Shown in pieces: positions 26,471 through 52,300 of a stretch of 64,000 nucleotides of DNA. Position 1 is the first letter of the stretch. Every line of letters begins with the position of its first letter. Position numbers and translations under genes: made by a program. Where the stretch lies: the NCBI RefSeq assembly GCF_000150275.1, contig NW_002060944.1, forward strand, positions 8,952,159-9,016,158, read 5' to 3'. Below the pieces are notes generated by a model that was given only the letters and a program-made list of their open reading frames with translations, searched no databases and was not told the origin of the DNA. This DNA comes from Trichoplax adhaerens. Its lineage: Eukaryota; Animalia; Placozoa.

Positions 26471-29400
26471 ATGGAGTCGAATATTTTCCAAGCAGCAGAA
26501 GAATTGATCCATTTCGTTAATCGTGGGCCTTCCCCATTTCACGGTAATTCTATCGACAGAAGATGACCAAAAATAGACGCTTAGCAAGAGGCAATTGAAA
26601 CTCTTTTGACGCACTCACTATAACTTACGGAGTCTTTGTTCGGTCTAATTTTGTTGTTGTTGTGAATGTTGTCGTAAGTGAGAAAATGGCAATAGTTTTC
26701 TTGTTAGTTGATTCAAGACGTGAAAAAGTAATCTATGAAAAGTCCATTTCAATAGTGTGAGGTTAATATGATGTTATAGGCTCATGTATGCCTTCCATTT
26801 CTAATGAGAGACGACTATTACTCTTGTACAATCTTCGCTATGACGTTTCTGCAAACGAGTTTGCCTTCTTGTTTTCGTTACTATGGTACTCAATGTGAGC
26901 CAATCTGGCTTTCCTGAGATAAATAGGTGTTTCAATCCCTAAGCAAACTGTAGTCAGAGAATAATTCATGGATAGTCAATGAGATGTTAGTTAAAATGAA
27001 ATACGAGCGATCACTGTTATACTTACTCGAACATGCTTAATCAATCAGCCCGAATTATTTTCTAATTATCTTGCAGTGGTTGAAGAAGTCAAGCGACGCC
27101 TTGGGCCTGCTGGCTTTCGACAACTGGATGAGCGACAACCATGGTCGATAGTGCCCAATGGACTGTACTTTACGCAGAAAAATCGATCGACCATTATTGC
27201 ATTTGCTGTTGGTGGCAAATACAAGCCTGGTAATGGCTTTAGTATAGTTGGAGCGCATACCGATAGCCCATGCTTAAAGGTCTGTAAACTTAATCTCCTA
27301 CTATATCAAGTCGATTAATATATCCAACACCTTCATCATATTGTCAATAACGGATACATTGTAACCGTCTAGTATTCAAGTCAACAACATTAAAGCAGAG
27401 GCATGGAAATGACAGTGGTGTAGCCATGTTATAATGACTAGCTGCTGCTACAAGTTATAAGCCACCTATTTTATTATTATAATAATAGTCCTTCATCGTA
27501 GTCATGATGACACAACTACTAACTCTTCATTTAGTAATCAGGAAGAATACCCATCATATGACGTAACACTGCTTAATATGTTTATAATGTTACCCCTAAG
27601 CCAAGGTTCCCCTTCGTTATTTATAATCCATTTCTGTTCCTTTCAGGTTAAGCCAATCTCCAAAAAAATTAAAAGGGATTACTTATGTGTCGGAGTTCAA
27701 TGCTATGGCGGCGGTATTTGGAATACGTGGTTTGATCGTGATTTAACTGTCGCTGGCAGAGTTTTAACAAAGGTAAGTAAAATTCTCTGTTAATGTTCGT
27801 GTATGGTAGGCAATCATGGAATTGAGGTTAGGTTTCATGTTGGTCGTTTATCATGGTTAAAGTGGCTATGATAGTCACATTACCTTTTCATAGTATTAGC
27901 AAATGGTTTCCATTTCATGCACTTGTTCTTGGTAGTTGTGTATGACCACTGGTCATATCATGTTCAGGCTATAATGGCGTACTTACTGTTAAATATCCGA
28001 CAGATTATCTCATCTACCACTTTTACAGTAATATCATCTTGAAGGTATCATAATTAGAATTATAAAGAAACACATGCGTTTGTAATGTTATCTCCACGAA
28101 TGGGTTGCTGTACTTCCAATATTACTGTAAACTGTAGATGCTTAATTGCGATATCTTTTGCTATCTTTAATTGTGGTGCTATAACATTCTTATGACAGGA
28201 TGAAAACGGTATTGGAGACCAGTTAATACATATCAAGCGTCCGATATTGCGAGTTCCGCATTTATGTATACATCTAGATCGTAGTAAAAATGATAATTTT
28301 GGAGCTAACAAAGAAACCGAGATGTAAGAATTATATCATGATGTGTTTCTGATAACAAATAATTTGTAACATTGTAAATGGAAAGTGATTTACGCTATCT
28401 GTTATGGGGTAAAATGAATTGAAAAATAATTACTATTGACTATACGAATCAAATACAACTGCAATCCATTAATCATTCATCAACAACTGATACTGTACAG
28501 TGTGCCTGTTCTTGCGACATGTATCCAGCAAGAATTACAAAAGTCTACTAATCATATTGGTCAGCAGGTACGTAAAAATTACGTTAGTTTGATATTGTTA
28601 ATTGGTCCATGTGCAAGCCAACCGTTAATGGCCTGTATCAATAATTAATTTATTTCAGGCATCAAAGCATCATTCAGCTCTTATAAAATTGATTTGCGAC
28701 GAGATTTCATGCAAGCCAGAACATATTTTAGATTTTGAATTATGCCTGGCTGATACGCAGCCTGCCGTAAGTCTTCTTCCTCCACTTGTAGTTTAAATGT
28801 GATTAACACGAAACAAACGCATTGTCGGCCCTCTGCACATCTAGTCATTTCAGAATATGTAAACGTTAAAATTTAACGCGCTACCTATCCCATATCGAAT
28901 TCGCTATGTTATTACTTAATTTTGAGCCAGAAAATTCCATGTTAAAGCGAATGTACGATACTTGCTAATCATCTGATTTGTGTTTAACAACTATATATAC
29001 TTTAGGCTATTGGTGGCGCTCTAAACGAATTCATTTTCTCACCTAGATTGGACAACTTGATGAATTGTTTCTGTGCTTTACAGGTTCGTCTTATGATAGC
29101 ATAAATCAGTAGATTAAATATGCCTGTAACACTTATTATAAAATTTGTCTTAAATGTACTGCATATGATAGGGACTATTAGATTCACTTCAGAATGAGAA
29201 CTCGCTGAAAGATGATCCAAATATTCGAATGATCTGCCTATATGATAACGAAGAGGTTAGCTATAGTTATTCTTAATGATATCAGACTTCGAGTGTAACG
29301 TAAGCGTACTTGCAAACATATATAGGTTGGATCGCAGAGTGCCCAAGGAGCCGGATCATCGGCTACAGAATATACTTTGCGAAGACTTTCTGCAGGTTAT

Positions 29401-32017: not shown

Positions 32018-35000
32018 TTATATACTCGCATTATCGTGCTCTTTTTGTTTGACTCTAATTCTGCCACTTTGCATAGTTACTTCAAGTCCTAGCTCATTTA
32101 ATGCAGTACTGTTAACTACACCCTTAATATTCAACTCAGCAATAACATTTTGATTTTCTATGTTTTCATCACAAAGATTCCTAATTGCTAATATGCACCA
32201 TTGTGTGACAAATGGGTTGCAAACGTCAAACCTGCATTGATTTAGCAGCAACGGTATGCCACCTAAAATACGAATCTAGAAAATATCGTACAAACATCAG
32301 TATGACAAAGGCATACCGAAGGAGAAACGTTTAATATTTTTCCAACTATCAGTATGCATATACCTCATCTTGAATGATGCGATTTCGGTATGACATATTG
32401 CCTATCAACCGTATCAAATTCTTTTTTAAATTGTCAGTATGACTACCCGGATTGTTTAATTCGGTTGGAGTGTCTTGGATTTTGCTAAAAATACCACCAT
32501 CCGATTGTTGATCAACTTCGTAAATAGACCTGAGTAATTCCAAAGCAGCTCTAACTAAAAGCAGCTGATTATGAAGATTCGGATACAGAGTATTGAGGCT
32601 CGTTGCATAGCCTAAAATATCCAATAATTTCATTGCAAGTTGCATCTAATCAAAATAAATGCAATTGAATTGTAAGAATAGATCCAAGGATAACAAAAGT
32701 ATATGAAATAAGCTATCACTACCACGGCTGGTAGTAAGATATAAGTGTACTATTCGGTAAAAGGTAATATTTACAACCTCTTCGGTAAATTGGCGAGTAT
32801 TTGCGTATTGTGCAATTACACCACAAATGGACAGAAATTTATCTGATATATAGAGACAGGTATTTTCCGGTATAATTGGTTGACGGAGATAAATACTTCC
32901 ATTTACATATGGATTACTGATATCGCCTGTGATTTAGTTTAAGGGAAATTTAAATTTGTAAATAAGCAAATACTTTCAATATCATTTCCTTTTTCAATAT
33001 GAAGCACAGTGGGTAAGGCGATTCTTACGTTTAAGTAAGACTTCTACGTGTTTAAGTAACGTCAAATGGCATTGATTTTCTAAACAGTCAAATAAATCAG
33101 GTAAAAAGTTTTCCTGTAAAAGCCTCTCAATTACAAATTCCCTAGAATGTAGTCAACAAGATCCTGGTTATTTCCAGACGAATTTGATACCTCGATAGTT
33201 GAATAAATGCCAAAAGATTACTATTCGTTAAATATAATAAAGTATGGAATGAGCTCTAAGATGATATAATGTGATTAAATCAGTTACATTGTAGTTACCT
33301 CCATTCACATGTTTGCAATTCTAAAACTGCCATCACTATAGGTCGGCCACGAAGCGGATCGCAGAGAGATCTGCAAAGGATAAATATTTATCATTAAACT
33401 TTGTAAATTAGAAAATAGAACACAGTTTATTTCAATAGCTGGATATATAGCATTTAAGCTAACACATCCAAGTTTATGAATCTTTATCCTACCTTTCCTG
33501 CCCTGAAAGCGTATTATACAGTGTAGCGCAAGTATAGGCTCTGACAACTTCATCACTACAGTTTAATCCAACACTACCCGTACAAATAAATTAGTGTCAA
33601 TTTACATATAGCAACCTTATTTTTATGCTCAATTTTTTTTACCAAGTTTTTGTTGTATATTATTCAAAGGTAAAACAATTATAATGATAGCAACAACTAA
33701 ATAATTTATTGATACTTACTAGAATATTCTATCATAGCACATAGACCAAATTTCATTTTGAATAAAGGTTTGTTGAACTGACATATTGCATAGAATTTGC
33801 ATGCATATTCGTGGTATAGAAATTACTGCAAGATCGCAAAGAGATTACAAAAATCAGTTTAAAATATTAGATAACTAACAAATCGCAATTTAAATATCTA
33901 CTTTATCCAGTTTAACTTTGAAAAGGTGGCTTAATTAGGAGTAATGAAATTATACTGAGTATACAATAATGCAGTAGGTAGCATGAGAATTGTGTATATG
34001 TTATCGTATCGATTATAGATTATAGAGAAGAGTAGACGTCTAGGCGCTCCGCTAATCCGATCAATTAAAAATTACAGCAGCAGAAACAGCAAAAATCATT
34101 ACTCTTTTAAATCGAATTTTATAAAGATGCTTAGCATTGGCACCTACCCGATTTATTCTGTAAAGTTATACGGCTTTGAAGGGTTTGTAAGATCAATTCG
34201 CCAGTGAGAAGGTGAACTTGCACATGGCTAGAATGAATGAAAGTTATACAAGGTGTATCTATTCAGATAAGATGTACGAATACACGATAATTTAAACTTT
34301 AATCTATAGACTGGCAATTATCGCTTAGCTATTCTCTAAACAGTTCATATTTCCAGTAAAACACCAATCTATTAGTAATCAAGCTAGATAAGCTACCATC
34401 TATTTAAATCGTATCAATCGGATATACTAAAAATCACATAAATGGAGTAGACTCTAGTGTAGCCGGTAAAAAATTTTCCAGTGTTGATCATAATACCCTA
34501 AGATTAGGATTCATTTGGGGGATTTTATTTGGTTACTTACAATAAATATTCCTGACCATGCGGAGCTTCGACACAAACATTACGTAAATATCTTAGTCCA
34601 TATAATATTGCCGATTCTAAATCATCATTCACACTGTCTTGACGTATCAGTTGCGCAAAATATGTCACGATTAGGTCTTTCGCAAAATTGATATCTCGTT
34701 GATGTGATTCAGCTCTGCAATTAGTGCAGTATATTGCATACATATCAGTTTGGTTCAATGGCATACAGTTAAAAAATCAAAGCCTATTCCATTATTAAAG
34801 TGAAGATAATATTGGCCATTACTGATTCCAATCAATGTAAACAACTGATTGCTTACTAAACGGTAGAAAGTTTGGAGGCATTTATCATCGCTATGTCTAC
34901 AATAGCCATGCAGTAATCAATATCTTCTATTCCAAGTATTGGGCATATTGTTCTGCATATTTAACTACAGCTGCAGGTTGTAAGAACATGATATAAAGCT

Positions 35001-35571
35001 CACATGCAAAATGTTAGACTCAAATGTTATCTCTTTCAATCAGAGTAGATCTATATTAGGTGTACAGTAGATGACCAGGTTATTTTAGAAAAAGTGAAAT
35101 CTAACATCCTACAGTTTACAATACTGAACTGGCAACAAAGCAACACTGCATGAGCGTCGATCTCTGCTAAGTCATGGTTCGGTATACTACCGTATAAAAA
35201 CTGAATTACTGTACGCTATACTATTGTATTTCAAAGTGCCTAACCATCATCAAGTCTACTTTAATCAATTAAGCTCATCTCCACTGCTACATCAAACAAT
35301 ATTGCTTACACGTAAAGAGTAAACTACTTTAATCCATTGAGGTGATTTCCTATTGCTGCACAAAACAACATTGCATTCATGTACACAGTATCGATGATAC
35401 AGTATACTCTTTGGTCTATCTATACAGTCTATCTTACCTATAGGTAGGAGATTTACTTAATTGAACTAATGTTTCCAATTCATGAACGTGGCGTTGAATA
35501 TTTGCAATAGAAGCATCTGGATTTGGAGATATCATGCAATCGGAGAAGACATCGCATAGCTCTTCCTCCAT
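32018..35571 (-). CDS. ATXN10: Ataxin-10 (armadillo-repeat protein), 10 coding exons, ~483 aa
   Basis: Exons in transcript order: 35571-35438, 34714-34541, 34227-34148, 33825-33720, 33573-33493, 33370-33299, 33141-33029, 32926-32775, 32645-32364, 32275-32018 (1452 nt, phases consistent). The C-terminal LIRLIGNMSYRNRIIQDEIRILGGIPLLLNQC..D..NPFVTQWCILAIRNLCDENIENQ matches the Ataxin-10 domain; the N-terminal region has LRYLRNVCV. Confidence 0.93.
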
Positions 35572-35591
35572 ACTTTGGCTTGCAACGCCTC

Positions 35592-36529
35592 CTACGAGAA
35601 CTACGATGACTGTTTGGTTATCGGCGTAGGTCTAGGTTACCATACACTAGTATGCTAAACTACAGTACACTAGAGATCGAGAAATTCGTAATCTCTCTTA
35701 TACCATTATACCAGTATGGCGTAAGAGACAATCTTCAGCCATACTAGTACGGACGGAAGCGAAGACGAAATGATGGATAAGTACGGACGGAAGCAAAGAC
35801 GAAATGATGGATAAGTACGGACGGAAGCAAAGACGAATTGATGGATAAGTACGGACGGAAGCGAAGACGAAATGATGGATAAGTACGGACGGAAGCGAAG
35901 ACGAAGTGATGGATAAGTACGGACGGAAGCGAAGACGAAATGATGGATAAGTACGGACGGAAGCGAAGACGAAATGATGGATAAGTACAAACGGACGTAA
36001 AGACGAAATGATGGATAAGTACGGACGGATGCAAAGACGAAATGATGGATAAGTACGGACGGAAGCGAAGACGAAATGATGGATAAGTACGGACGGAAGT
36101 GAAGACGAAATGATGGATAAGTACGGACGGATAAGTACAGACGGAAGCGAAGACGAAATGATGGATAAGTACGGACGGAAGCGAAGACGAAATGACGGAT
36201 AAGTACGGACGGATGCAAAGACGAAATGATGGATAAGTACGGACGGAGGCGAAGACGAAATGATGGATAAGTACGGACGGAAGCGAAGACGAAATGACGG
36301 ATAAGTACGGACGGATGCAAAGACGAAATGATGGATTAGTACGGACGGAGGCGAAGACGAAATGACGGATAAGTACGGACGGAAGCGAAGACGAAATGAT
36401 GAATATAGTAAGTAGGGCAGACTCTAGTCTACACCATGACGGAACTCAAGATTACCTTTCAACTGCAAATTTTGACTTATCAACTCAGCAGATTACACTG
36501 ATCATTGGCAATTTGGAGTCTTTACTTAC
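35592..36529 (-). other. Predicted 5'-UTR intron of ATXN10 containing the 34-bp minisatellite; the upstream exon ends in a 7-codon uORF (MSIGMA*, 36550-36530)
   Basis: Consensus donor AG|GTAAGT at 36530/36529 (minus strand) and acceptor TTCTCGTAG ending at 35592, 20 nt before the ATXN10 ATG. No transcript data. Confidence 0.55.
35746..36405. repeat. 34-bp minisatellite, 19 full units plus one 14-bp truncated unit; consensus AGTACGGACGGAAGCGAAGACGAAATGATGGATA
   Basis: Direct reading: units start at 35746, 35780, 35814 and so on. The truncated unit AGTACGGACGGATA is at ~36120. Few substitutions between units; strongly purine-rich on the + strand. Confidence 0.98.
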
Positions 36530-36550
36530 CTATGCCATGCCAATGCTCAT

Positions 36551-37130
36551 TTTTGATTCTATCGATTGATATCGAAAATGTATCCTAAATTAAAACGCTC
36601 GCAATCAAACCTCTGTAGTGAATGGAATAACAATCAGGGCCGTAAACTCTTAGTAAGCATTCCAACTTGCAAAAAAACCTACTACTCCAGATCGTTGCAA
36701 CAGCTTTATCGATTCTCTTGTCTCTACTCTACCTAATATCAAAGTTTGATACAATTTTATTAAGATTAGACATAGCTGGTATTAGGTTTAGTTGGGACAA
36801 GAGAACGGATCGAGCTGTTTTAGCGATGTGTAGTACTCGGTTTTTGCAAGCTGAGGTGACGTAATGGTCAGAGTTTACTAGGCCTTAATACCGCTCTTGA
36901 ACTGGAAAGCATCGATGTCTACCGGTACTAACAGTCTAGCAGAGACTGCTAAAAATGCAGAAATATCCTGCCGGAGTATATTTCTAGAAGTCTAGCAGTA
37001 GTTGATGGCTGCAGTTAACTTAAAGTTACAGTAATCGACGACTAGACTACTTGTAGAGTACAGTAGGCATGGTGATACTGTATGTGTCGTATTTATTTCC
37101 CTAACAAACCCTTACGAATGACAGTCGTCC
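36551..37130. promoter_or_regulatory. Putative bidirectional promoter region shared by ATXN10 (-) and the HAD gene (+)
   Basis: Lies between the predicted first exons of two divergently oriented genes. Contains a CRE-like TGACGTAA at ~36857. Position-based inference. Confidence 0.4.
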
Positions 37131-37294
37131 AGTATGGGTAATTCAGTATGTGTTGGTGTAGTATCTTAAATAGTCATTACTGGGGAAATCAGTTTGCACA
37201 GAGTTGCTAGGGCTTAACAGAGACCAGATACTGCTGGAGAGACGAATCGCCATTGGAAGATTAACAATTTCGATTTCAGTTATTATTAAGGGTG

Positions 37295-38017
37295 ATGATG
37301 GAACTATCTGATTTCGATGTTTTAACTTTTGATTGCTACGGCACCTTAATCGATTGGGAGAGTGGTATTCTTCAAGCGCTCAAGCCTTGGTTAAACCAGC
37401 ACAAGATTGAGCTGACGGATGCCACCATCTTGGAAATGTATGCACGCCATGAATCGAAGATTGAGCACGATTTTCCTGGTATAGTCTATACGGATATCTT
37501 ATATCGTGTTCATAAAGCTTTAGCAAAAGAGTGGAATATCATCCATTCGACGGATGATGAAGCAACCCGCTTTAGCTTGTCGGTTAAAGATTGGCCAACT
37601 TTTTCCGACTCTCATGATGCTTTAAAAACACTAAAGCGTTACTATAAATTAGCCATACTTTCCAATATAGACAACCAATCCATACAACATAGCATTAACA
37701 AATTAGGCGTTGAATTTGATTACGTCTTTTCGGCTCAGGACATTGGATCGTATAAACCCAATCAGCGAAATTTTCAGTATTTACTGGATAACTTGGCAAC
37801 TTGTGATATACAAGCCAGTAAAGTCTTACATACAGCCCAGAGTTTATTTCATGATCATGTACCGGCTAAAGCGATAGGAATGGCAACATGTTGGATTAAT
37901 CGACGCTATAATAAGTCAGGTTGGGGAGCGACGCCGGAACCTTCCCATCCAGTCAAACCTGACTTCCAGTTTAATAGTCTGGCAGACATGGCAGCTGCCA
38001 GACAACAACTAAATTAA
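37295..38017 (+). CDS. Haloacid dehalogenase type II-like HAD-superfamily hydrolase, intronless CDS, ~240 aa, bacterial/fungal type
   Basis: Single uninterrupted ORF (ATG at 37295 or 37298). HAD motif I LTFDCYGTLIDWESG, motif II LSN, motif III GSYKP and motif IV HTAQSLFHDH are present, plus the C-terminal WINRR..GWGATP typical of the bacterial/fungal 2-haloacid dehalogenase-like family. Confidence 0.93.
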   Translation: MMELSDFDVLTFDCYGTLIDWESGILQALKPWLNQHKIELTDATILEMYARHESKIEHDFPGIVYTDILYRVHKALAKEWNIIHSTDDEATRFSLSVKDWPTFSDSHDALKTLKRYYKLAILSNIDNQSIQHSINKLGVEFDYVFSAQDIGSYKPNQRNFQYLLDNLATCDIQASKVLHTAQSLFHDHVPAKAIGMATCWINRRYNKSGWGATPEPSHPVKPDFQFNSLADMAAARQQLN

Positions 38018-40124
38018 CGAGTACAGATCCAAACAATCAATTACTGTGGAGAATACAACTTACAATCAATACCTGGCAATCAAGTTATTGCCGGAAATAA
38101 CTACTGAAAATTACATGTTAATTGACAGCTAATATCATATAGTACTATGTCGAGTATACTGTACTAGAGTTACCGGAAATTGACGTAATCAGGCATTTTG
38201 TGAAATGGCTATGCCTAGTAATGATATCCCTCTGTACAATGTATGGTCTAAAATGAAATAACTACTATTTTATCTTTACTATAAGTGGTTTTAAGTTATT
38301 ATGTTGTAGTACATGCGTCGCCTTGATTTAGCCTATTACAGACTGGGACACGATCTGTATGATAAAATTATTTGAATGAGAGGCATCGATTGTGTTGCAA
38401 TGAGAAGGTTAGAACCTACCCTGTATTTACCTATATAATAATTTTATCGCTGATGTCTTATTGATTGCTAATTTTTATCTATGACGAATAAAGCCCATGT
38501 GGACATTGCACCATCGGCTTTAAAGTAGATTGATCATTCACTATTAGAAAAAGTTTTACTTCTAGTCGACTGCCCTTATAATTATTGTAGTTCTTTACTA
38601 AAATAATACCTGACATCCAATATCGAACCTATCTCAAGAAATAGTTGATAAAGCAAGAAAGCAACCGATCTATCAAAGCTGCTTCGTTTTAATGATGCTC
38701 TACAAGCTAATAAACTTCATTCCATTTACAAACTGAAATAGGTTACTAAAAATGGGATATCGTTCTTCATCATTAGTAGAGACTATATTTTGTCTTTAAC
38801 AATACAGATATCTTCATTCAAAAAGTATGCGTGCAATTACTTATTGCCTTATTTAGTTATTTACATGTAGAAATTAATTTTGCGATTCTTTGATTATCTC
38901 TTTTTCACATCGCATTGATACTATAGTAAATATGATAGCTTGGTAACTTAGCGATACTATCAATTTTGTTAGAATATTTGCTTGAGCTTTACTTTTAACA
39001 ATTAGGTATGCTACATTTTAGTATCTGAAATAGCTACAGATGACTGTGTGGCATACTTATTCCTTATGCATGTTAATCAAGCTGTAAAGTGTACATTAGC
39101 TCTCGGTATTAAGAAGCCTATTGCCAGTGTATACCGCTGAAATGTAAAGCAGTTTCTACGGTATTACGTGCATCCCTACACTGACTGGATATAAACATGC
39201 ACTGTGCCCACATTCACTTGAGTTCTAAACAACCTGATACTCAGCATATTTAATAAACCATGCACTGTACATAAAAGAATATTTCTAGTTTATATGACAG
39301 TAAGTCATAATTGGTGATATCTTGGGTAATTTGCTCTAATGTTTTCAATCATTTGTAAAATGGAGACGGAAATTCCATCAAGGCGACATTTAGCGACTTT
39401 GATAATTATTTAATACCTTATACGCAACAATTGATTGTATTATATTGGGTACACCTTACAAATAAATCAGAGCGCATCAACAAATGAAACTCGTATATCA
39501 TCCTAGTTATACTGCATACGAGAACGTATGCTGTTAATACTAAACAAAACAGTGAAAAAGACGGTGTCGGCAAGAAATTATTATTATGATTACAGCTTAA
39601 GGTCGATACTATCCTTATTAAAGTACTATACGTGCACACTGCAGTTAGCCTACGAATGAGGCTACAATTAAGCTATGCAATGACTGTATCTAACAATTAC
39701 TATTTACGGCACAGAGCACTGCATACAGATCATAAATACACACTTAAAGTCTATCCCAGTTGAAACCTTAGTACAGATATGATGTTACAGGCGAGAGAGT
39801 ACAGTAAAAGATACTTAGTCAATAATAGTAGATTATCGCATATACTTACTTAATAAGAAGTTGCATAGATGGAAATGAAAGCAAGTAACTTTACATCAAT
39901 ACATCACATCAATTATATATGCAGAAAATGTGCCGACATTCAGGCATCATCAGGCTAAGAGATAAAATACAATGTATGGTTTCACATAGTTAGCTGTAAA
40001 ATTCGGGAAAAATTGGCTAATACTATTGCATGATTACCAGTGACCATCGGCTAATATGCACAGGTAAAAATAGCTATAGCTACTCTTATTTTTTAAAACT
40101 GATTGTTTGCGGTCCTATAAATTA

Positions 40125-43100
40125 TCACATTACACTATTATCATATGACGAGTGACCTAAAAAGCTCGCTTGATCTGGAAATTCCGCTTGCAAATTCTCA
40201 CGAATATTGATTTCGTCAGCAATGCTATCATGTGGCTCCATATAGTTTCCGCTCAGGTCAGGCATTTCGCATTCTGTCTCAACTGTTGTTGTCATTGATT
40301 GAGGCTATTACAAAAAAAGTCAGGGTAAGAAATCTGAAATCTACACTTTATAAATTGTATACAGTAAAATGTTACCGTCTCTGGAGCTGGAGTTGTACAT
40401 GTAGACATCGAACCAGAATTGGTGCTAAACACAACATTCGTATAGCCAGAATGAAAAATGCAATAAGCAATTTTGGCATGACAATTGGCAAATAAAGACA
40501 ATTTACAACTATTCTATAAAATGATATAATGAAAAACCTACTTTCCATTTAGGATTAACTTCCACGTTAACAAAGGAACGTAGATACTATTACCATTTTC
40601 CTTTGATGTTGCATCATTCACTAACCAAAATTATTAAAAAAGTTATCTAGGTCACCAACAGTCCGCGACAAATGCGGTTAAATTTTGGAGGCTTCAAATT
40701 TACCTTGTTTTGGTAGCTTCGGTGCTTTGTTAGTATGACTACGGAAGGCTTCCTCTTTGGAGATCCCTCTCGGGTAAACATATACGAACTGAGGAATGTC
40801 AATTAAACTATAGCAGAGAGAAACGTATACCTCGTAAACGCAGTTCATTACATGTTATAACAAAACATTTCTAACATAGCGAATCTTAGAACAGTAAGTA
40901 ATATCGCCAATATACCATTCTGATAATGTCTTTAATGCAGTAAAGTTCTTTTCATCAAGAGGTTGGGGAAACTCCACAACTTTTTGACCTGAAAGTCAAG
41001 TAAAAAATTTGTTATAACTGCATCACACCCGCATAAATAGACAATATGCATGTACTCAAATACCCATATCTCCAATCCCTGTGTAGCAAATACTAATGGC
41101 CTTAGGTTTTCTGGAACTAAATCTTAGTAGAAAAGTTCCCGGATCACAACCCAATAAAATTTCTTTCGCTCGTTCTTTAGTGATAAATCCAACAAATGAC
41201 CTACATAAAAAAGAAAAAATTTTAACAATATAGATATAATATGATATGAAAAATATTTTTTTTAAGCATAGTCATCCGAGTACTCGACCTACCCTTCACA
41301 CCAAATTGCTTTAAGCTCTGTGTTACTTTGCATTAAATCCATAATGGTGTAAAACCATTTCCAGAACGGTTGGTTAAATTCTGAATTGGGTATCTGAAGG
41401 TAAAAGTAGTATTTTGGATTAAATGGCTAGATTAGAAAACCTGCCTTATTGTGATGCATACAGTACTGCAATCATGCCATGTGCAACATAAAGTTACCTT
41501 AATAAATTTCTGCCAACTAACAGCAGCACAAGATAAATCCACCTTCATCGGATTCATATCACCTATCATATCAGCCAGTGAGTAAATTCAGAGTAAACCT
41601 TAAGGAAAAATTGCAATTCCTTAACAGCTCTATAAAGATTGCCAACCTAATAACTTTGACGCTAAAAATTGCAAATTTTCCTCAGTTAAACCACTACCAA
41701 CTCTATTTTGAAATTCTGTATTTAACATATGCGCAACACTTGGCCATTTTGCTTCTTTTGGTACTTCAAAACCTTCGCGATTCTATAATAGAAATGGAAT
41801 GTAATCACATCCCTTTCATCTTCGAAAAATATATTCAATTCACAAAAAGTGAAATATTATCAGTACCGGAGAAGAAAAATAATTGTCCCAAACGATCGTG
41901 CCCATTGCATTGGCGGTCTGATTGGTATTTACTATAACTACCGTTGGTAAAGATAGATCCTGTATAACATAACAATAATTCAACTGATTACTAGATATTA
42001 TACACTATATCACTATATAATACCAAACATCAGGTATTCATCTCGTCCAGTAAGGCAAATACAGTATTCAATTTATGAACGTTAATAGTAGAATTAGATA
42101 ATTTTAATTATAACTAAAATACCCGAACTACAATCTTTTTATTCTGAATAGCAAATTCCGACGTGAATAATATAGCAAATTTCAGTTCTGTAACCATCTA
42201 TGGCACAAAAGAAATTCAAGTTCAGTAACTTTTATGCAATTTTTATATAAAATTTTGAAAGATCTACCTCTTCACCCTTTGTTGAGGCTCTCCTTCCAAT
42301 TTTCTAACAAAATAAACAAGCACAAATGTTAAATTAATAAATTTTCAAAAGTTTTCACTACCTTGAATGCAGTTTATGATTATAATTGAAGTGAACGGCC
42401 CCATACCATATTTGTTAAATCAACTTTCCACATCCTGGTTTGACTATCAAACTGCATAGGCTGCAATACGTAATCAGTGATATAAGTATTCTCTTTAACG
42501 TGTGTAATCAAACGTTTTAAATCTAGGTCGTAATAGCGCATACCTTGCAACTATTCAAAATTTTACCACTAGCTTCTAGGCTGAAAATAAAGTAATATGA
42601 GTTATATTAACGCAAACTTTCCAACTGTCACATCATACACTATCAAGCAAACAACAGTTCTATTCTCTCAAGCACTCACTCAGGCGGAAAGTTACCGCTT
42701 TGTATACTACGAACTTGTGATTCGCTATCAAAAAAATAAAATAAAATTTAGTCAATTTATACCTTAAATTGCTTTTTAACAACATTTAGACACGATAAAA
42801 GTTACATCAAACCTTAATATATGAGCTTTAACGTCCGTTAAACCAGATAGTGCATTTAACTTAGTACCAATTAAGGAGCTAAGCATGATATACAGTCATA
42901 AGTAAGAATTACAGATAGGTCTCATGATATATAAGTTATAACAGACATAGCCCCTGCATAGAAGCAGTTTTTCTGTATACTCTTCAAAAGCATGATCTTA
43001 CCAAACCGAGGCTGCAAACTTAGTTTCAACTTTGATAATTTGAGGAGGTTGTTTCATAATGATAAAGGTTCTGTAGAATTTAATAAACGAGATTTCCATT

Positions 43101-46100
43101 ACAAAAATGAATAAGGCAATAAGCGAATGTTGAATCAGTTGAAATAGTATAATTACTCTTTAACAAGTTCACAAAGAAGACTTTCAAGCTCTTGAAAAAT
43201 GATGTCTAGCCTAGGTTTCACAGGCTCATTATTAGGCATAAGATTTTTATCGCATACAGCATGAACCTTAACAGGGAAGCCAATTGAATCATTAAGTGAA
43301 AGAAAATATTTTTAAATGTTGAATTATATCATTTTAGCTAAGGCTGAAATACAAACCTGTTCCACCAAAATTTTAGTTCTCCATATGGCATCTAAGCTGC
43401 TTTCACACCATAACTGAATTTGTTTTAATTCCTCACAATGCTTGACAGTTAAATTTTCTATGCCACATAATGTTTTTTGCCTCTGTTTCCATTCAAACAA
43501 CTGACCGGCTAAAACTTTCGTGTGCAATAGCTTGACACCATCAACAATCTTAGTAAAATTTTCTGTAATAGTCTATATAATAATCAATTATAGCAAGCCA
43601 TCATCAGTGGTACGTCCACTAAATTGCGATAGTGTTTATTATATGATCATAACCTACCAATTCAGCTTCTCTACGGCATTTTATAATCTCAAGCATATCA
43701 TTCCATAAACCTTGGCGTTGCTTAAATGCTTGAACCTATACAAGTGATTATTTAGAAAAGTAAATTATTAATGAAGGCTAAGAATAGAGTTTCTAGAACC
43801 GAAGTGTTGCTTAAACTAATAATAAGAATTAGAATTATGCTCCTTTATAATACCTGATTTGGAGGATATTTAGCACCAGCTGTAGGAGGATATCTGCATT
43901 CAGGGTGTTCTATAAGCAGGTAATTATCAGTTTTTACTTTGAAATTAAAATTAAAGAACACTGGAGTGATAATGATGACATTAGTAATTAAAACTGCTAC
44001 AACACCATCCCGAAATAACTTACGTACCAGAAAGAAATTTATTCCAATGATATGACAGAATATTGAGATTTTCTCCAAGTTGTTGAATATTCTTCCAGCC
44101 ATTTTCAGCTTCAATAGTTACTAACTGTAGTTGACTACATACTCTTCTAATATCTTCAGCAGTCGAACAGATGTTCGTATTATTACTATTATTATTCCAT
44201 TCCGAAGAGTTTCCCGTCCTCTGCAATGTCATCATGGCCTTATAAGACATTATTTACAGTTTCAGTAATATTTTTGCTCATATATATATGTACATATTTA
44301 TAGATATATAGTGAGGAATAATGAAACACCAAATTAAATTTTTAACTCTTTGGTTACCAATTCAAATACGAAAATGTTTATACCGCACATTCTTCTTATT
44401 GATCTAGTTTGTTAAGTACAATCTGTAACCACTACTGTTTGTATCAATATCCATTAATATAGCGTTATCGGCTACTTTATAATTTCTTTACCTCTTGACA
44501 TAATCTAGTTTCTGTTTCGAGACATTCAACAACAATCTCCAATAAATTGACTGGATTATTCTGGAACCGATTCTATTAGCATTTTAATAAAATTTGAGAC
44601 ATAAATAAATAATTATAAACCATACTTCATATCATTCAGAATTGGAAAGCAGTAATATATATTATATAACCAATGATCAATTTATACATCTGTTATATTA
44701 GAATTTACTCCAGCTACATATTAGCAATTACAATAGTAAGTTAGCGCACATACGGAGAAATCATCGATATATTTTGTCATACGAGACCATTGAAGCAAAG
44801 AATCTTGTGTCATTATTGATTCCAACTGTTATTAAAATGCAAGAAATACAATTTAGTACATCATACTCCAGATTCTTGTACTGTTACACGCCAGCACTAT
44901 CTATTTATAACATGTGACATCCAGTATGATTGCTGTATGTTAGCAGCCAACCGTTACTAAACATGCAAGAAATACAATTTAGTATATCATACTCAAGATT
45001 TTCGTACTGTTACACGCTTATACTATCTATCTATAGCATATGACATCCAGTATGATAGCTGTATCTTAACTGATGGACAATCTCAGTTAATTCGATCCAG
45101 TATCAAAGCATATTCAAATTAACTATATAGATACAGTATCTCAGCGAAAGGTCAAGATTGTGATAATTTATTTATTAAATCAAAATGTTGTCTAGCAATA
45201 TGATGCATTGTAATAGAAGTAAAATAGGCAGTCATTTAACAAATACCCAACGATGCGCAGTTATCGCCATGAATATACTTGGTATTCACGGTAAGTAACA
45301 ATAATATAAAAAGGTATCTATTGCTATTCAAGGCTGATATATTGATCAGAGAAATAATACTGGGATGTATTGCAATAAGTCTAGACTTAATTGCAGATAA
45401 TTATGTACAGTACATAAAACTATTTCCCTTTAGTATCTATATAAATAATCCAAAAGTTGTTTTTTCTTATACAAGCTGTTGTACACATTTAATTATTAAT
45501 TATATGTCTAGATTCACAGTACAATTAAGGTTAAATAGTATACAATGAAGTTTTCAAAACTAGACATAAAATAAAAATTACGTTGGATTAATAAAGATGA
45601 TAAATTGGTACCAAGGATAAAAATAATAAAAATTGTAAAACTTTGTCAATTTCATCAATAAAGTAAACTCACCTGCTGAGCTTGTTGCCTCATAAGATTC
45701 AGAATTTCATCGCGGAAGCAAATTGCGGTCATTTCATCGCGATTTTGCCTTAAATTCCTATTGAAAATAAAAAAGAACTATTTATATTAAGCTTTGGTTT
45801 ACTAGATTCATCCATTCTATTCCTCTATCTCCTATTCTTAACATCAACCTTTTTGCGTATCTATAGATAGCTTCGATCTGTATACGCGTATTTTTCTTTA
45901 CGTTTTAGGCAAACTTTCTACTACTATTCCACTATGAATTTCTACTAATAATAAAATTGAGCTACCAACAGTAAGGTTTATCATAATAGTTATTTTAGAC
46001 GATCAATGTTAAACAACAGAATCATTTTTCTTGAGTTGGACATCCACTTTAGTCGAGATGAATAGAAATGACTAGCAAACAATAGGTAAAGTTATATAAT

Positions 46101-48591
46101 ATTGCGAGCTAGTATTCATTTCAGAACCCGTTAGTCGATTCGTTAATTTAGTTCAAGTTGTTATTGTCAGTTATTATGAATTCGAATAATAGCACTTTCA
46201 ATAAACTACGTCTTTACTCTACAGATAAATAAATATTCACTTTTTTTGCCAGCCATGATAGAGGTTTTCAAAGAAAACAAATGTGTGAATGACAATTTAC
46301 AGTATCCACGCAATATGGAACCATTTAACATCGGAAAAAGTTGAATAAAAAAATTGTACGCAAGCTGTAAAGCCACAAAAAAAAGTCGTGAAGGATATCA
46401 TTGTTAGAAATTGGAACGAACTCTAAAGTTATGATGATTTAAGCGTGTAATAATAGCGAATTTTTGGCTGCATTGATATAAGCATAGAAGATGATCATCA
46501 AATATAACACTTACCATATTTTCTTGACACTGCCATCAAATACGGCTAAATGCCGTTATTAATGCTAAAACGTGATAATATAGTCTACGTAATAATCATC
46601 CTTAGGGACTACTCGCCACTTTCTCCCTTTCCCCCCCCCCCAAAAAAAAATACTTGCGAATTTTTACTTTAAAGTTAAGGGCAAAAATTAGCGAGTAGTC
46701 ACTATCATCATTAATTGATTGCTCTCTGTTTGGACATTAAATGTAACTACATCAATCTAGATTCAATAACGATGAAAACTAGCATCGGTATAGTGTAGTA
46801 TTTGGTACTACAACACTATATTAGTGTACTAATAAAATTAATATTCGGCAGTAATTCGTGCTATCGATGGACGTGATCTTTCTTTTCAATAACGGTAAAA
46901 AGAAATAAAAATTAGTACAGTCGATAGAGAACATTGACTTCGTTCTCCGCTACTACACAATAAATCTTCCTCGAATTTTTAATATGGGCGATAGCATCAT
47001 TAACGTAGCATGATAGAATATTGTCAAAGAAGGAAAAAAAATTGAAATTGAAATAGTATTTAATCTATTTCCATAAGAAACTGAGAAAGCCTTAGAAATA
47101 CAGTAAGACTACAATTTTGGGGCTGATATCGGTCTCGTAGACACGCTAGTGATCTATCGTTCCTATTGACCATTTCTTAAGGTGTTGCAACGTAAACTAC
47201 TCTTAACAAAGGAAAACATCAATCCAATGGCTCGATATTAATTTTATTTAAAATGATTACGCTAGCCCATGATTTTGCCGATTCAGCCGGGTATTTAAAG
47301 GTAGTAACCATCATGTACAGGAAATTTTATCATTAGAATGTCCTATCGAATCGCTTACAACATGATACATTTAGTCAGTCACGCCTGAAAATTATTACAC
47401 CAATTTCATGTGCAAAACTTGGAATCTGCATCGACTTTATCATAGACCCGATTTTTAAAAATCGCTCTTGATTGTAAGCTGTAAGATGTATCTAATTTGA
47501 CTAACAAGCTGATCAAGGACACAGTTGCTCGTTCAATAACGTCGTTATTTCTATGCAATTGATCCGCGTGTACATGGCAGGTTCATTGAATATTACCACA
47601 AACCAGGCTGTGCTGCAATAGACTGCGACTACTTTGCCATCTTGCGCTTCTTGAATTTTAGAGGTCCAAAAATCTGTCTATTGTCAGAAATTCATTGCAG
47701 ATCGTTTCAAGTTGGCTTCTTACTCTACATGATGGTTTCATTGGCGTTAATTTGACTTGAACAATGACATCCGTTGCATATTACTGTGGGAGAGTGGAAA
47801 TGTCTATAAAACTCGCTATTGATTTCCTCCCCCGCCAAAAAAAAAAAATTATTCATATAATATACGTCTAATCCAGTGGAATCAGATCGTAAGCTGTCTT
47901 AGACCATCATTAGCCTTGGTGTTGTTATTTAAAAGTGGCGATCAGTTTAAAATGTCCCTTACTCAACTCTTGACGAATGTTTATTTAATTACAATCTCGG
48001 GCAGTATCCCAATCCCCTTTCAACTGCAACGTAATAACAAGAAGTACCATATCAAAGTAAATTCATAGTCAAGCATATGAAAAAAGAACAAAAAGGAATA
48101 AAGAAAGAGAAAATGATAATAATAATCATTATTTATGTAGATCCAAATTTCCAATTTGGAAATTGGATAGGATAAAAAAAAATTTGAATACAACTGTGGA
48201 ATAGTTGAAAGGGAAAGAGAGAGAGAGAGAAAAAAAAGGAGAATGCGATGATGAATGATGGAGGAAAACATGTCTTCCGATACGCTATGCCATACCGTAT
48301 CAACGCATGGAGAAAAGGACGATCGGTGTTGGCGATCAATGCAATTGATTCTCTCGTCTAGGATATTTTTACTAGGTGATTGATTGCCTTTAGGTAAAGT
48401 ATGATAGACTGGGTCCAATACTATTTGATTACTCTACGCTAGGATAGATAGAAAGCTTACCAAAACTGGTTCTCAATCCAATTGGCAAAAGTACATCTGA
48501 TTTCAATATGAAATTGATGCTTTTCATAAGTGCGAAGCATTTCTTGTAATGCAGGACCGCGAAGACTTTGAGATGCTGCCCAAAGAGCCAT
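40125..48591 (-). CDS. STAT: Signal transducer and activator of transcription (STAT5-like), 26 coding exons, ~806 aa
   Basis: Exons: 48591-48461, 45757-45673, 44825-44754, 44572-44492, 44220-44028, 43909-43854, 43735-43658, 43572-43357, 43266-43157, 43070-43002, 42878-42813, 42724-42680, 42580-42544, 42460-42407, 42303-42268, 42197-42123, 41959-41867, 41782-41647, 41562-41498, 41393-41293, 41200-41064, 40988-40916, 40807-40704, 40620-40542, 40424-40376, 40304-40125 (2421 nt). Domains: N-domain MALWAASQSL..FHIEIRCTFANWIENQFW; coiled coil EWKQRQK; DBD TFIIMKQPPQIIK, SLPTVVIV, WDNYF; linker FWKWF; SH2 GFITKERA..PGTFLLRFS; candidate phospho-Tyr in NSIYVPL. Confidence 0.95.
44822..45070. repeat. 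Diverged ~125-bp tandem duplication (two copies) in STAT intron 2, including the exon-3 acceptor
   Basis: CCAACTGTTATTAAAATGCAAGAAATACAATTTAGTACATCATAC... at 44822 recurs as CCAACCGTTACTAAACATGCAAGAAATACAATTTAGTATATCATAC... at 44947. The copies align through GACATCCAGTATGAT.GCTGTAT. Confidence 0.93.
46603..46704. mobile_element. MITE-like ~100-bp element with terminal inverted repeats and TA flanks, in STAT intron 1
   Basis: Left arm TAGGGACTACTCGC.. versus the reverse complement of the right arm TAGTGACTACTCGC.. (10-bp perfect core GACTACTCGC, extending imperfectly inward to ..CCCTT). TA at both ends; internal C11A9 tract. Confidence 0.5.
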
Positions 48592-49058
48592 TTTTCAATC
48601 CTTGCAACGATGGACCAATGCTATGGTAGTGTTATATCAATCTCCTTGTCAATCAACCGATCCAATACTGTAGAATCAAGGTAATGCCTAATTGCTTTGG
48701 ATTTCTTCTCACTCTTCAAGCACACTATCCGATGCCTTCTCGTCCAATCGATGTAATTGAGTCAGGAATATTGAGTGCAATCAAATAAACTTGCAAGAAG
48801 TGAAAATAACTCACTAGCTTCTGATTCTACCGCAGGCAATACCCCGGTTGCGCCTGGTGGGTTAGCGATCCTGGTACGCCAGGACTACAGTATACTGTAC
48901 TGTATTGTGGTAGGTGCTACGATGGACCAAGATACTGTACACTGTAGATTAGGGTACAGGACACTGTAGCAGGATACTCTCCCGGTTGGGTCCACTGTAC
49001 CTCCATGAAAATTTTGGATTGTCTTTTTTTTTTTGTTGGAATTCATTTTTAATTTTCT

Positions 49059-49322
49059 TATTCCATTCAATTCCTTGCCCTATACCATTCAATCCCTTGC
49101 CCTATACCATTCAATCCCTTGCCCTATTCCATTCAATTCCTTGCCCTATTCCATTCAATTCCTTGCCCTATTCCATTCAATTCCTTGCCCTATTCCATTC
49201 AATTCCTTGCCCTATTCCATTCAATCCCTTGCCGTATTCCATTCAATTCCTAGCCCTATTCCATTCAATTCCTTGACCTATTCCATTCAATTCCTTGCTC
49301 TATTCCATTCAATCCCTTTACC
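49059..49322. repeat. 22-bp minisatellite, 12 units, consensus TATTCCATTCAATTCCTTGCCC
   Basis: Direct reading: units start at 49059, 49081, 49103 through 49301. About 470 bp upstream of the STAT ATG. Confidence 0.98.
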
Positions 49323-52300
49323 TATATACCAACGCCATGACAGCGTTGGTGTTGAAAACGAGACAGCCAGTTCCGTTTCCTTTTTCTCTCCAGAGTTACC
49401 ATGAGTTGATCGAGACACTTTTCTTCTTTACTCACAGCTTTCTTTTCTCTTTTCAAAGTTGCTTACGCCAGACTCGATTACAGTACAACAACAATAAAAC
49501 CAAAGCACAGTATGCAGTCTCTACTGCATTGGCCATTGTGTCTGCGAGAGAAGGGAGAGGATAAAAGACGGCGATTACAAGGTTTTTGTTTTTCTTTCAC
49601 TTTCTGATCTTCCAAGTCCAAATTATCCTCTCAAACAGGTCTAAACCAAGGCACAACAGTAGCCACCATTGGCCAATATGGACTCCCATATTGATCTTGC
49701 ACCGGTGTCTACCCACAGCGTGACGTCCATCTGACCGTTCGTCCCAGTACTTTTCGACACGAACAGACAACCAGCTAGGCACTACTTAACCCGTCTACCC
49801 GCACTGGAAAGAAATGGTTGCTGCTTATCGAGAAGATGGATATCGAGTTTACCAACTACTTTAAACTAATCTGGTTGGGGTACAACTAATTTATTGCTGC
49901 TATAATATGGACTTGTAAATTCGAATCAAAAATGAAAAATTGGCTAATAATTGGATATTTCTATCGTGTCTCCTCTGCGATGGACTATACTGTACTGGAT
50001 AGTGGATAGTAGCGCCTTTGTTGTAATAACTTTGCTTTCCAGCGATGCTCCACCATACTTGTTCAATCGAGATGGCCACTAAATTGCGCCCTTGATCTCG
50101 ACATAAGTACATATATAACAACGCCTAATCACAGACATGATAAGAGGGCTTTAGCTTGGTACTCAAAACAGAACGTGCACAGCTAGAATAGGATATACTT
50201 TGGATTCATGTACGTTGCTTCATTTTTTTGACGTACTTAGACAACACTCACTCGACACAAACTTAGCCCTAAAACAGTTATGATCACCCTATGAGTATTT
50301 CATATTGTCAGGATAAGCTACGAACAGTAGAATGATAAAAAAAAATGGAGTGAAGAACAACACACTTTATTCTTTGACTCGATGTCACAAATTCTTCACC
50401 GATTTTTTATACGGTAGAGTGAAAAACAGCGATCGACGAAGAAGAAACAATGTAGAGTTTATCGTAGCGGCCGTTCTCTCAAATAACATATTCCACTAGA
50501 TATTTCTTCCAGCAGTGAAAACCGGAATGGATGCTTTTAGCCTATCAACTCGAGAGTATATACCCTATGTATATATATAAACCTCAATCTTGGAATCGAG
50601 CTAAAATGAAATGTCATCCTAAGACGTATTAAGCTTGCTTTCCAAATTTGAATGTTGCAATTATTATTGATTGTGTAGCTATCTGAAACATATTTAGCTT
50701 GGTTATACTAGAAGAAATACAAAACAATTTGAGGATGATGAATCATTGGAATGTCCTAAGCAACGCATGCAAAGTTGGCTAGTACAATAACAAAATGTGC
50801 GTGAGACCATGCATCAGAAAATAGAAGATAATGAGACTGGATGCGTACGGCACTACCTTGGATATTCCCATTAATTAAGTTAATGCAAGACGAAGATTGC
50901 GGTTATTCACAATCAATAAGCATTTTCAAGAACGTCTAGAATAACACAAGATATTGGCTTGGCAGAACCGCTCTTCAGTCCTATTGCAACACAATGAAAA
51001 GCAGTCATTGCAGTTGGAATAGACTGAGAGAGAAGTTACCCTTAACCAAATTACCAGTATAATAAGAGCTATCGTAACAATAGAAAGTAGAATATGCTTA
51101 AAACATTATACAGTTCATTCTCCTATCCACTAAAATGATTAAAAGACAATGCTTACAACTCCATGTGACGCAATAAGCCATAGCCAAAAAAATACTTCTA
51201 TAATGCATTTAAATGTCATGTGGAACAGTATGTTACCCATGTGGAACTAGATGAAAACAATTGTATTTATTAAAAGGAAATTGCAAGATTGTTAATTTTT
51301 AGATGAAAACAAATAAATTACTCTTGATCATTCTATAGTAACAAAAATACGGCCTAATTTGATGACTAAGATGATTTAAAATTTGCATAACAACACCCTA
51401 CAAGTCACAAAATCATTCTGTCTTATCTGTTACCCTCAAAATGGAAAAGCCTAATTGATCCGCATAACAGCATTGATGAATAAAAATGAGTATTGATATC
51501 GTATCTTACCATCGATGCACGCGTCGAACTATATAAAATACTCTGTAAACAACAACAAAAAAAAGCAAGTACGAGTAGTATCACACTGCTGCAAAGAAAC
51601 AACACCAAAATGTAAGAATATTTGATTGCTAGAAAGAGGAAAAGAAACCTAAAATACTACTATAAAATAGCTAATCAAAGAGTGTATAAATATCATACAC
51701 TACGATTATTATACATTCACGAAAGAATGAAGAAAGTCAAGGAAACATACTGTCAGTGCATCTTACTTTGACAGGGAAAAAATTAAAGCTGCAAGCCAGC
51801 TAAAGCCCTCATGCTTATATTTGGAAATAAATACTACTGTATTTTTAATGCGACATATCAAGATCAATTTATGGATCTTAGGAATGACCGCAACGTAACA
51901 GTATACTCGTATATATATAAAATATGTATGCTGGAATATGTTGGCCAGTAGAAGATTTTAAAGAGTATTATAAACGATGAAATGTACCCCAAGGTTGAAT
52001 ACTAATTTTGCGTTTACTGGGCAACTGTAGCTAAATCATAAACCAAACACCATATCATCGTAAAACAAACGTACTATTTAAAATCGGCCCAATAATTTCT
52101 GAAAAATGCAGTCTACATTCTGCCAACATCGCTGTGTCATACAGTACCACATGAGAGCGAATTTTCGCATGGGTTATAGTTTCAATCTAGTTTGCAAAAT
52201 GGACAGAATTAATATGAAAATATCATAAAGTCCCTAGAGATCAACAAGGTAACATTCGCGTAAGTACAATTATATACCAAAACTTCAGTCACAAATTTCA

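Follow-up and report, generated by a model that had tools for sequence, protein, structure and literature searches.

The window, as we call the whole stretch of 64,000 nucleotides of Trichoplax adhaerens DNA that was analysed, carries at 37295..38017 on the plus strand a single-exon coding sequence for a hydrolase of the HAD superfamily (240 amino acids and a stop codon), which, judged by its closest characterised relatives, appears best filed with an L-azetidine-2-carboxylate-hydrolase-like subfamily within the proteins called 'HAD type II' (TIGR01428). Head-to-head with it lies an intron-rich homologue of ATXN10 on the minus strand (32018..35600; the 5′ limit is approximate and was projected from the gene model of Trichoplax sp. 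H2), identified by an exon at 32018-32251 (-) that matched Atx10homo_assoc with 80 bits. Tail-to-tail with the hydrolase gene is STAT, also intron-rich and on the minus strand (39448..48600, 5′ limit approximate). Its last exon, including the 3′ UTR, occupies 39448-40304, and it was recognized from an SH2 exon at 41059-41271, a STAT_alpha exon at 43327-43572, and the H2 gene model; a profile search of the genome with PF02864 (STAT_bind) gave no match because the STAT exons are too short. The neighboring genes contain one intron per ~50-140 coding nucleotides. At 27076-27318 (+) lies an M18 aspartyl aminopeptidase exon (DNPEP-like, 84 bits), and the same order is found in the H2 assembly.

The spacer between the 5′ end of ATXN10 and the hydrolase gene contains a minisatellite (35746..36410; a 34-bp unit in ~19 copies with an 88% match), whose H2 counterpart is ~85 bp shorter. 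From there an upstream spacer, 36411..37221, extends to the hydrolase transcript and presumably contains the promoter of the hydrolase gene. A further tandem-repeat block at ~48950-49400, close to the 5′ side of STAT, has repeated open-frame peptides in several frames, with local GC up to ~40% and a strong negative GC skew. The single run of N in the whole window is at 60815-60864; none lies between the hydrolase gene and either neighbor, which agrees with the statement in the initial annotation that no assembly gap separates the three genes.

Reading frame and HAD motifs

The hydrolase frame is intact at 37292/37295..38017 (+), the 240 amino acids being counted from the first of two ATG codons that stand side by side at 37295 and 37298. 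An in-frame TAA at 37262-37264 blocks upstream extension; no longer frame is possible and, therefore, no targeting peptide has been added to the protein. Residues 2-238 align over the full length with residues 1-236 of bacterial enzymes of 240 amino acids, and this end-to-end alignment means that the coding sequence is without an intron. In profile searches the protein gave 45.4 bits with PF13419 (HAD_2) and 39.9 bits with PF00702 (Hydrolase), for which the Pfam cutoffs are 23.8 and 26.4, respectively, and 142.3 bits with the NCBIfam model TIGR01428, 'haloacid dehalogenase type II', for which the curated equivalog cutoff is 125.4. The HAD motifs are complete and invariant among relatives, with the nucleophile D13 in motif I, S123 in motif II, K154 in motif III, and S183..D187 in motif IV. 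All of the residues that are invariant in the subfamily are kept (D13, Y15, G16, T17, W21, Y65, S123, N124, K154, S183, H186, and D187). The initial annotation had described an intact single-exon frame of 240 amino acids, with four intact HAD motifs, belonging to a HAD type II-like family; on each of these points our frame check, alignments, and profile scores gave the same answer.

Motif I reads D-C-Y-G-T and is without the second Asp that HAD phosphatases require, a feature that fits carbon-centred rather than phosphoryl chemistry for the putative hydrolase. The gene is present in a single copy in the assembly (105.6 Mb, 1414 contigs). The sole further match in the genome was a 30%-identical HAD segment at G000:C1390:300666-301034 (-), locus L004, which presumably belongs to an ordinary animal HAD-family gene.

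Enzyme subfamily and predicted substrate

The closest solved structures were those of the L-azetidine-2-carboxylate (AZC) hydrolase of Pseudomonas sp. A2C (3smv/8ywo/9v14; E 3e-75), with ~49% identity as counted on the alignment, and a second set, 8hp5-7, matched with E 6e-75. The Pseudomonas enzyme, AC hydrolase/HAS, resembles the placozoan protein in its length of 240 amino acids and end-to-end alignment, in the nucleophile Asp and pocket, in a motif I that lacks the second Asp and so is not of the phosphatase type, and in having no N-terminal extension; in contrast, the placozoan gene is nuclear, has eukaryotic UTRs, and lies outside a catabolic operon with transporter and transaminase. In the L-AZC-soaked structure 8YWO the pocket comprises Asp12, Tyr14, Trp20, Tyr64, and Asn122; the enzyme takes L-AZC but neither D-AZC nor proline, and its activity is abolished by the D12A substitution according to earlier work cited in the same report (preprint 10.64898/2026.09.25.754441). 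All five pocket residues are kept in the window protein, as D13, Y15, W21, Y65, and N124. They are invariant throughout the large subfamily, including its distant 50%-cluster representatives, and therefore mark an intact enzyme and not which substrate it uses.

Two members of the subfamily have been characterised, the Pseudomonas enzyme and AzhA of Aspergillus nidulans (AN12472), and both hydrolyse L-azetidine-2-carboxylate. A kcat/Km of ~1e5 /M/s has been reported for AZC turnover. AzhA and the Pseudomonas enzyme are 44.5% identical (PMC8016842); thus, with its ~49%, the window protein is at least as close to the Pseudomonas enzyme as is the second proven AZC hydrolase. From these comparisons AZC ring opening would be the most likely activity of the hydrolase, a prediction to which we give about an even chance. 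AZC synthases are present in bacterial natural-product pathways (PMC11794875), making a microbial dietary source of AZC conceivable for placozoans. A literature search on AZC in marine algae returned nothing relevant, nor did we find AZC described from the habitats of placozoans. Bacterial homologues of the hydrolase number in the thousands in soils and seas.

The same transferred gene might instead encode a true L-2-haloacid dehalogenase acting on small 2-haloalkanoic acids from algae, a reading close to the initial annotation, which had suggested detoxification of algal organohalogens. The TIGR01428 score, above the cutoff of a model named for such enzymes, speaks for it, and several of the closest PDB entries were named '(S)-2-haloacid dehalogenase' by their depositors. 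The chemistry would also be the same, since both reactions proceed by attack of an Asp on C2 of a carboxylate, with displacement of a leaving group; L-DEX YL (1jud/1zrm) and DehIVa (2no4) have in common with the placozoan protein the HAD fold, the Asp nucleophile and ester intermediate, the Ser and Lys motifs, and the 'HAD type II' name. The match to these two enzymes, however, is remote and partial (E 1e-10 to 1e-7, residues ~102-214). The classic L-2-haloacid dehalogenases 1jud/1zrm gave E 1e-10 over residues 102-214 only, and the canonical set of 1jud, 1zrm, 2no4, and 3um9 ranged from E 1e-7 to 1e-10 over only part of the hydrolase. Halide binding in L-DEX involves Arg41, Asn119, and Trp179 (L-DEX numbering). 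Moreover, the demonstrated function within the subfamily is AZC hydrolysis only. With E values of 3e-75 for the AZC-hydrolase structures against 1e-10 for the classic dehalogenases, detoxification of organohalogens becomes the less likely reading, and we consider a dehalogenase unlikely, at perhaps one chance in several.

Phylogenetic position and source of the gene

The best 120 database hits to the hydrolase were 53-61% identical to it, with one exception at 70%. All of those bearing an organism name were bacterial (Rhodospirillales, Acetobacteraceae, Chelatococcus, and Chloroflexota), and no eukaryote-labelled relative was present among these 120 beyond the window's own cluster. The initial annotation had named a vertically inherited clade of animal and choanoflagellate orthologues as the observation that would speak against transfer, and no such clade appeared among these hits. 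The nearest Atlas clusters were 84-100% Bacteria, and the listings of cluster members contained almost no organism names, none of them eukaryotic. A pattern scan of genome contigs yielded only 12 named loci, with at most 51% identity and none in the sister clade.

In a careful maximum-likelihood tree (76 rows, LG+C20+F+G4; fungal AzhA sequences not included) the window protein paired with P0002, the 70%-identical sequence, with support of 100/98, and this pair was nested in a clade, also with support of 100/98, together with P0003, P0004, P0005, P0006, and P0008. A quick tree of 150 rows gave the same placement. The nearest relatives found in a bacterial context are 57-61% identical to the hydrolase. 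P0003, P0004, P0005, and P0008 sit in dense bacterial gene contexts, which for P0003 consist of birA and an nnrD-tsaE-amidase run; for P0004, of rdgC, a carbonic anhydrase, and a thioesterase; for P0005, of a cold-shock protein, a peroxiredoxin, and a PLP enzyme; and for P0008, of EamA and a B3_4-domain gene. The contigs bearing sister-clade sequences have a GC content of 33-38%, and the named relatives of the RdgC encoded beside P0004 are Gammaproteobacteria MAGs, with 62-70% identity. The AT-rich, bacterial contigs of the sister clade and the kinship of this RdgC point to an AT-rich gammaproteobacterium-like lineage as the probable donor.

P0002 was found in two runs, on contigs of 1.9 kb. 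Its flanks have 32-36% GC and contain no open frame longer than 54 amino acids, unlike the tightly packed bacterial contigs, and when these contigs were compared with the present genome the coding sequence alone matched, at 72%; the flanks did not. Three of the five sister sequences came from runs of adjacent accession numbers (SRR2136xxxx). A small ankyrin-repeat protein is encoded at 1585-1902 of L005, the low-GC gammaproteobacterial contig with the closest bacterial homologue; proteins of this kind are frequent in host-associated bacteria.

A fungus or other eukaryote of the AzhA lineage could have been the donor in place of a bacterium directly. Ascomycota and Basidiomycota commonly have AzhA homologues, azhA is also intronless, and in the published tree fungi and Trichoplax fall into one large cluster, so that the T. 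adhaerens hit and AzhA are found together (PMC8016842). The single T. adhaerens hit surprised the authors of that tree, in which hits from eukaryotes other than fungi cluster with proteobacteria and fungi (PMC8016842). However, AzhA is fungal and widespread in Dikarya, whereas the placozoan gene is nearer to bacterial sequences in our tree, which was built without AzhA; the nearest relatives there (57-61% identity, 100/98 clade) lie on dense bacterial contigs, the best 120 hits hold no eukaryote-labelled sequence, and AzhA is just 44.5% identical to the Pseudomonas enzyme. We therefore regard a fungal donor as very unlikely.

Vertical descent of an ancient eukaryotic gene, with loss of its introns in placozoans and loss of the gene itself in nearly all other animals, would be in keeping with a gene common to at least two divergent AT-rich lineages and with a composition near that of the host. 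It is nevertheless highly improbable in view of the strongly supported nesting within bacterial sequences, a BLASTp survey of NCBI that returned only isolated non-fungal eukaryote hits (PMC8016842), the distant, 30%-identical HAD segment as sole other match in the genome, and the contrast between an intronless coding sequence and neighbors with an intron per ~50-140 coding nucleotides. We hold horizontal transfer of the hydrolase gene from bacteria to a placozoan to be very probable.

Linkage to animal genes

The Trichoplax sp. H2 assembly GCA_003344405.1 (NOWV01000072.1) encodes an identical 240-aa protein (P0271) in one exon between the ATXN10 and STAT models; NOWV00000000 is the genome of Trichoplax sp. 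H2 (PMC6057997). The gene order DNPEP-ATXN10-HAD-STAT is common to the window and the H2 assembly, and the H2 locus (20.7 kb, no N) is colinear with window positions 27213-48000 at 99.2% identity, straight through the shorter minisatellite. Contigs from seven studies contain the hydrolase stretch. Those of four runs, both DNA and RNA, were aligned to window positions 36420-41400, a region chosen to avoid the minisatellite; all of this material was assembled contigs, as opposed to raw reads. The DNA of another sample of the same organism gave a 12.7-kb contig that covered 36420-41400 in one piece, and an 8.9-kb DNA contig from the sister organism ran from 37102 through the ORF and the STAT exons to beyond 41400. 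All short-read contigs end at the minisatellite, and linkage on the ATXN10 side comes from the two assemblies. The chimeric join with symbiont DNA that the initial annotation had raised as a possible objection was found neither on the STAT side, in the contigs of other runs, nor in the H2 assembly. These observations support the location of the hydrolase gene inside animal chromatin. A bacterial or symbiont contaminant misassembled onto animal DNA, to be thought of because the Trichoplax assembly is known to include bacterial contigs (PMC3641634, PMC6057997), has next to no probability, since two independent assemblies concur, contigs of seven studies contain the stretch, the flanks are AT-rich and non-coding, and alleles in the sister lineage vary in the pattern of the host. 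Single contigs also connect the ORF to spliced exons of STAT, which refutes misassembly on the STAT side.

In the DNA run of the sister organism, paired contigs were present upstream of the hydrolase gene at 36435-36621 (0 vs. 9 differences from the window) and at 37006-37131 (0 vs. 3), and they look like two haplotypes. The DNA and RNA contigs of this organism also carry a 7-nt insertion, GTGATGT, at 38392 in the hydrolase 3′ UTR.

Transcription

The hydrolase gene gives rise to an mRNA that is not spliced and has a long 3′ UTR. One RNA contig of 1477 nt, colinear with the genome, defines the smallest transcribed extent of the gene on the plus strand, 37222..38698, and comprises, without a splice, the coding sequence preceded by 5′ UTR of at least 73 nt and followed by ~680 nt of 3′ UTR; assembled contigs cannot give transcript ends, strand, or polyadenylation. 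A second RNA contig of 1360 nt, from a run of the sister organism labelled RNA-Seq, covered 37293-38629. Depth was zero at 38758-39258, in the spacer between the hydrolase gene and STAT, in both RNA runs. STAT contigs from these same two runs were spliced at seven GT..AG introns of 71-202 nt between 39954 and 41291; therefore, the libraries are RNA, and coverage of the hydrolase gene does not come from carried-over DNA.

An AATAAA hexamer lies in the hydrolase 3′ UTR at 38487..38492 (+), and a second is located downstream of the first at 38709-38714 (+). No splice joint indicative of a 5′-UTR intron was found upstream in the RNA contigs, which are colinear from 37222, although contigs can drop rare forms. 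Low-depth RNA pieces were present farther upstream at 36471-36758 (depth 4.7) and 36977-37156 (depth 8.4), compared with a depth of 62.8 for the gene itself; these pieces could derive from pre-mRNA, from divergent transcription at the promoter, or from a 5′ UTR that extends farther upstream.

Selection and base composition

Comparison of the window gene with P0002 gave a dN of 0.17-0.18 with dS saturated, and an LWL85 dN/dS of 0.087. Contigs from the Trichoplax lineage showed five differences within the ORF, of which four were synonymous, and the H1 and H2 hydrolase proteins are identical. This pattern indicates that the hydrolase has been under purifying selection since its split from the lineage of the 70%-identical copy. 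The sole non-synonymous variant, 37413 T>G, which would change Leu40 to Arg, occurred in an RNA contig of run X19 and was absent from the DNA contigs compared.

The GC3 of the placozoan hydrolase gene is 0.39, relative to ~0.31 for host exon pieces and 0.24-0.30 for the nearest bacterial homologues, whose overall GC content is 36-38%. In RSCU the hydrolase gene correlated at 0.52 with host exons and at 0.43-0.48 with its bacterial homologues. As the nearest bacterial homologues are equally AT-rich, composition cannot show amelioration, and the earlier proposal that the AT-rich codons had become ameliorated to the host is left unsupported. Other parts of that proposal fared better. Lateral acquisition was borne out by the linkage to animal genes, the unspliced RNA contigs, the nesting among sequences from bacterial contigs, and a dN far below dS, and a gene still under selection is what a dN of ~0.17 against a saturated dS indicates.

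Discussion

We think it rather likely that, taken as a whole, the locus is explained by a bacterial HAD hydrolase that was captured, was kept, and acts as an AZC hydrolase. The bacterial gene, for a small cytosolic hydrolase of the HAD fold, would have been inserted between the promoter side of ATXN10 and the 3′ end of STAT, earlier than the split of Trichoplax from the lineage carrying the 70%-identical copy, and the placozoan gene has retained the uninterrupted frame of bacterial type. In the proposed reaction D13 would attack a carbon of the substrate to form an ester intermediate, which would then be hydrolysed by water; with AZC as substrate the four-membered ring would be opened to yield 2-hydroxy-4-aminobutyrate. 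The proline mimic AZC might in this way be removed before it is loaded onto tRNA-Pro and misincorporated into protein, and such an activity could have a role in dietary detoxification in an animal that digests microbial biofilms externally. A more specific proposal, which we offer tentatively and hold to be somewhat less probable than not, is that the protein is the first known animal AZC hydrolase, was acquired from an AT-rich gammaproteobacterium before the lineages of placozoans diverged, and is retained because it shields proline decoding (ProRS) from AZC, or from similar strained-ring amino acids, set free as bacterial and algal biofilms are digested externally.

Bacterial transfers have been proposed before for genes on Trichoplax host scaffolds, namely dapF, murA, BPL_N, rsmE, phrB, GNAT, and mhpC (Driscoll et al. 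2013; PMC3641634). The screen behind that list was aimed at sequences resembling those of symbionts, and for this reason the hydrolase is absent from it; the hydrolase differs from the listed genes in that its nearest relatives are of gammaproteobacterial type and not rickettsial. The main text of a compendium of metazoan horizontal gene transfer (PMC13342648) contains no dehalogenase and mentions Trichoplax only in a reference. The only prior mention of the T. adhaerens gene that we found is the one-line remark in the AzhA study (PMC8016842).

Well-documented bacterial genes that are expressed and under selection are few in early-branching animals, and the support for transfer of the hydrolase gene is unusually clean, consisting of two assemblies, contigs shared with spliced neighbors, a second, divergent copy, and a supported bacterial sister group. 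Anyone inferring the metabolism of organohalogens in placozoans would be misled by 'haloacid dehalogenase type II', a database name that our result corrects. If the assignment of AZC as substrate is true, protection of the proteome from a non-protein amino acid would be a further animal trait gained by gene transfer, comparable with the detoxifiers of cyanide and plant toxins in mites and whiteflies, and it would suggest that metabolites of the AZC type matter in marine biofilms.
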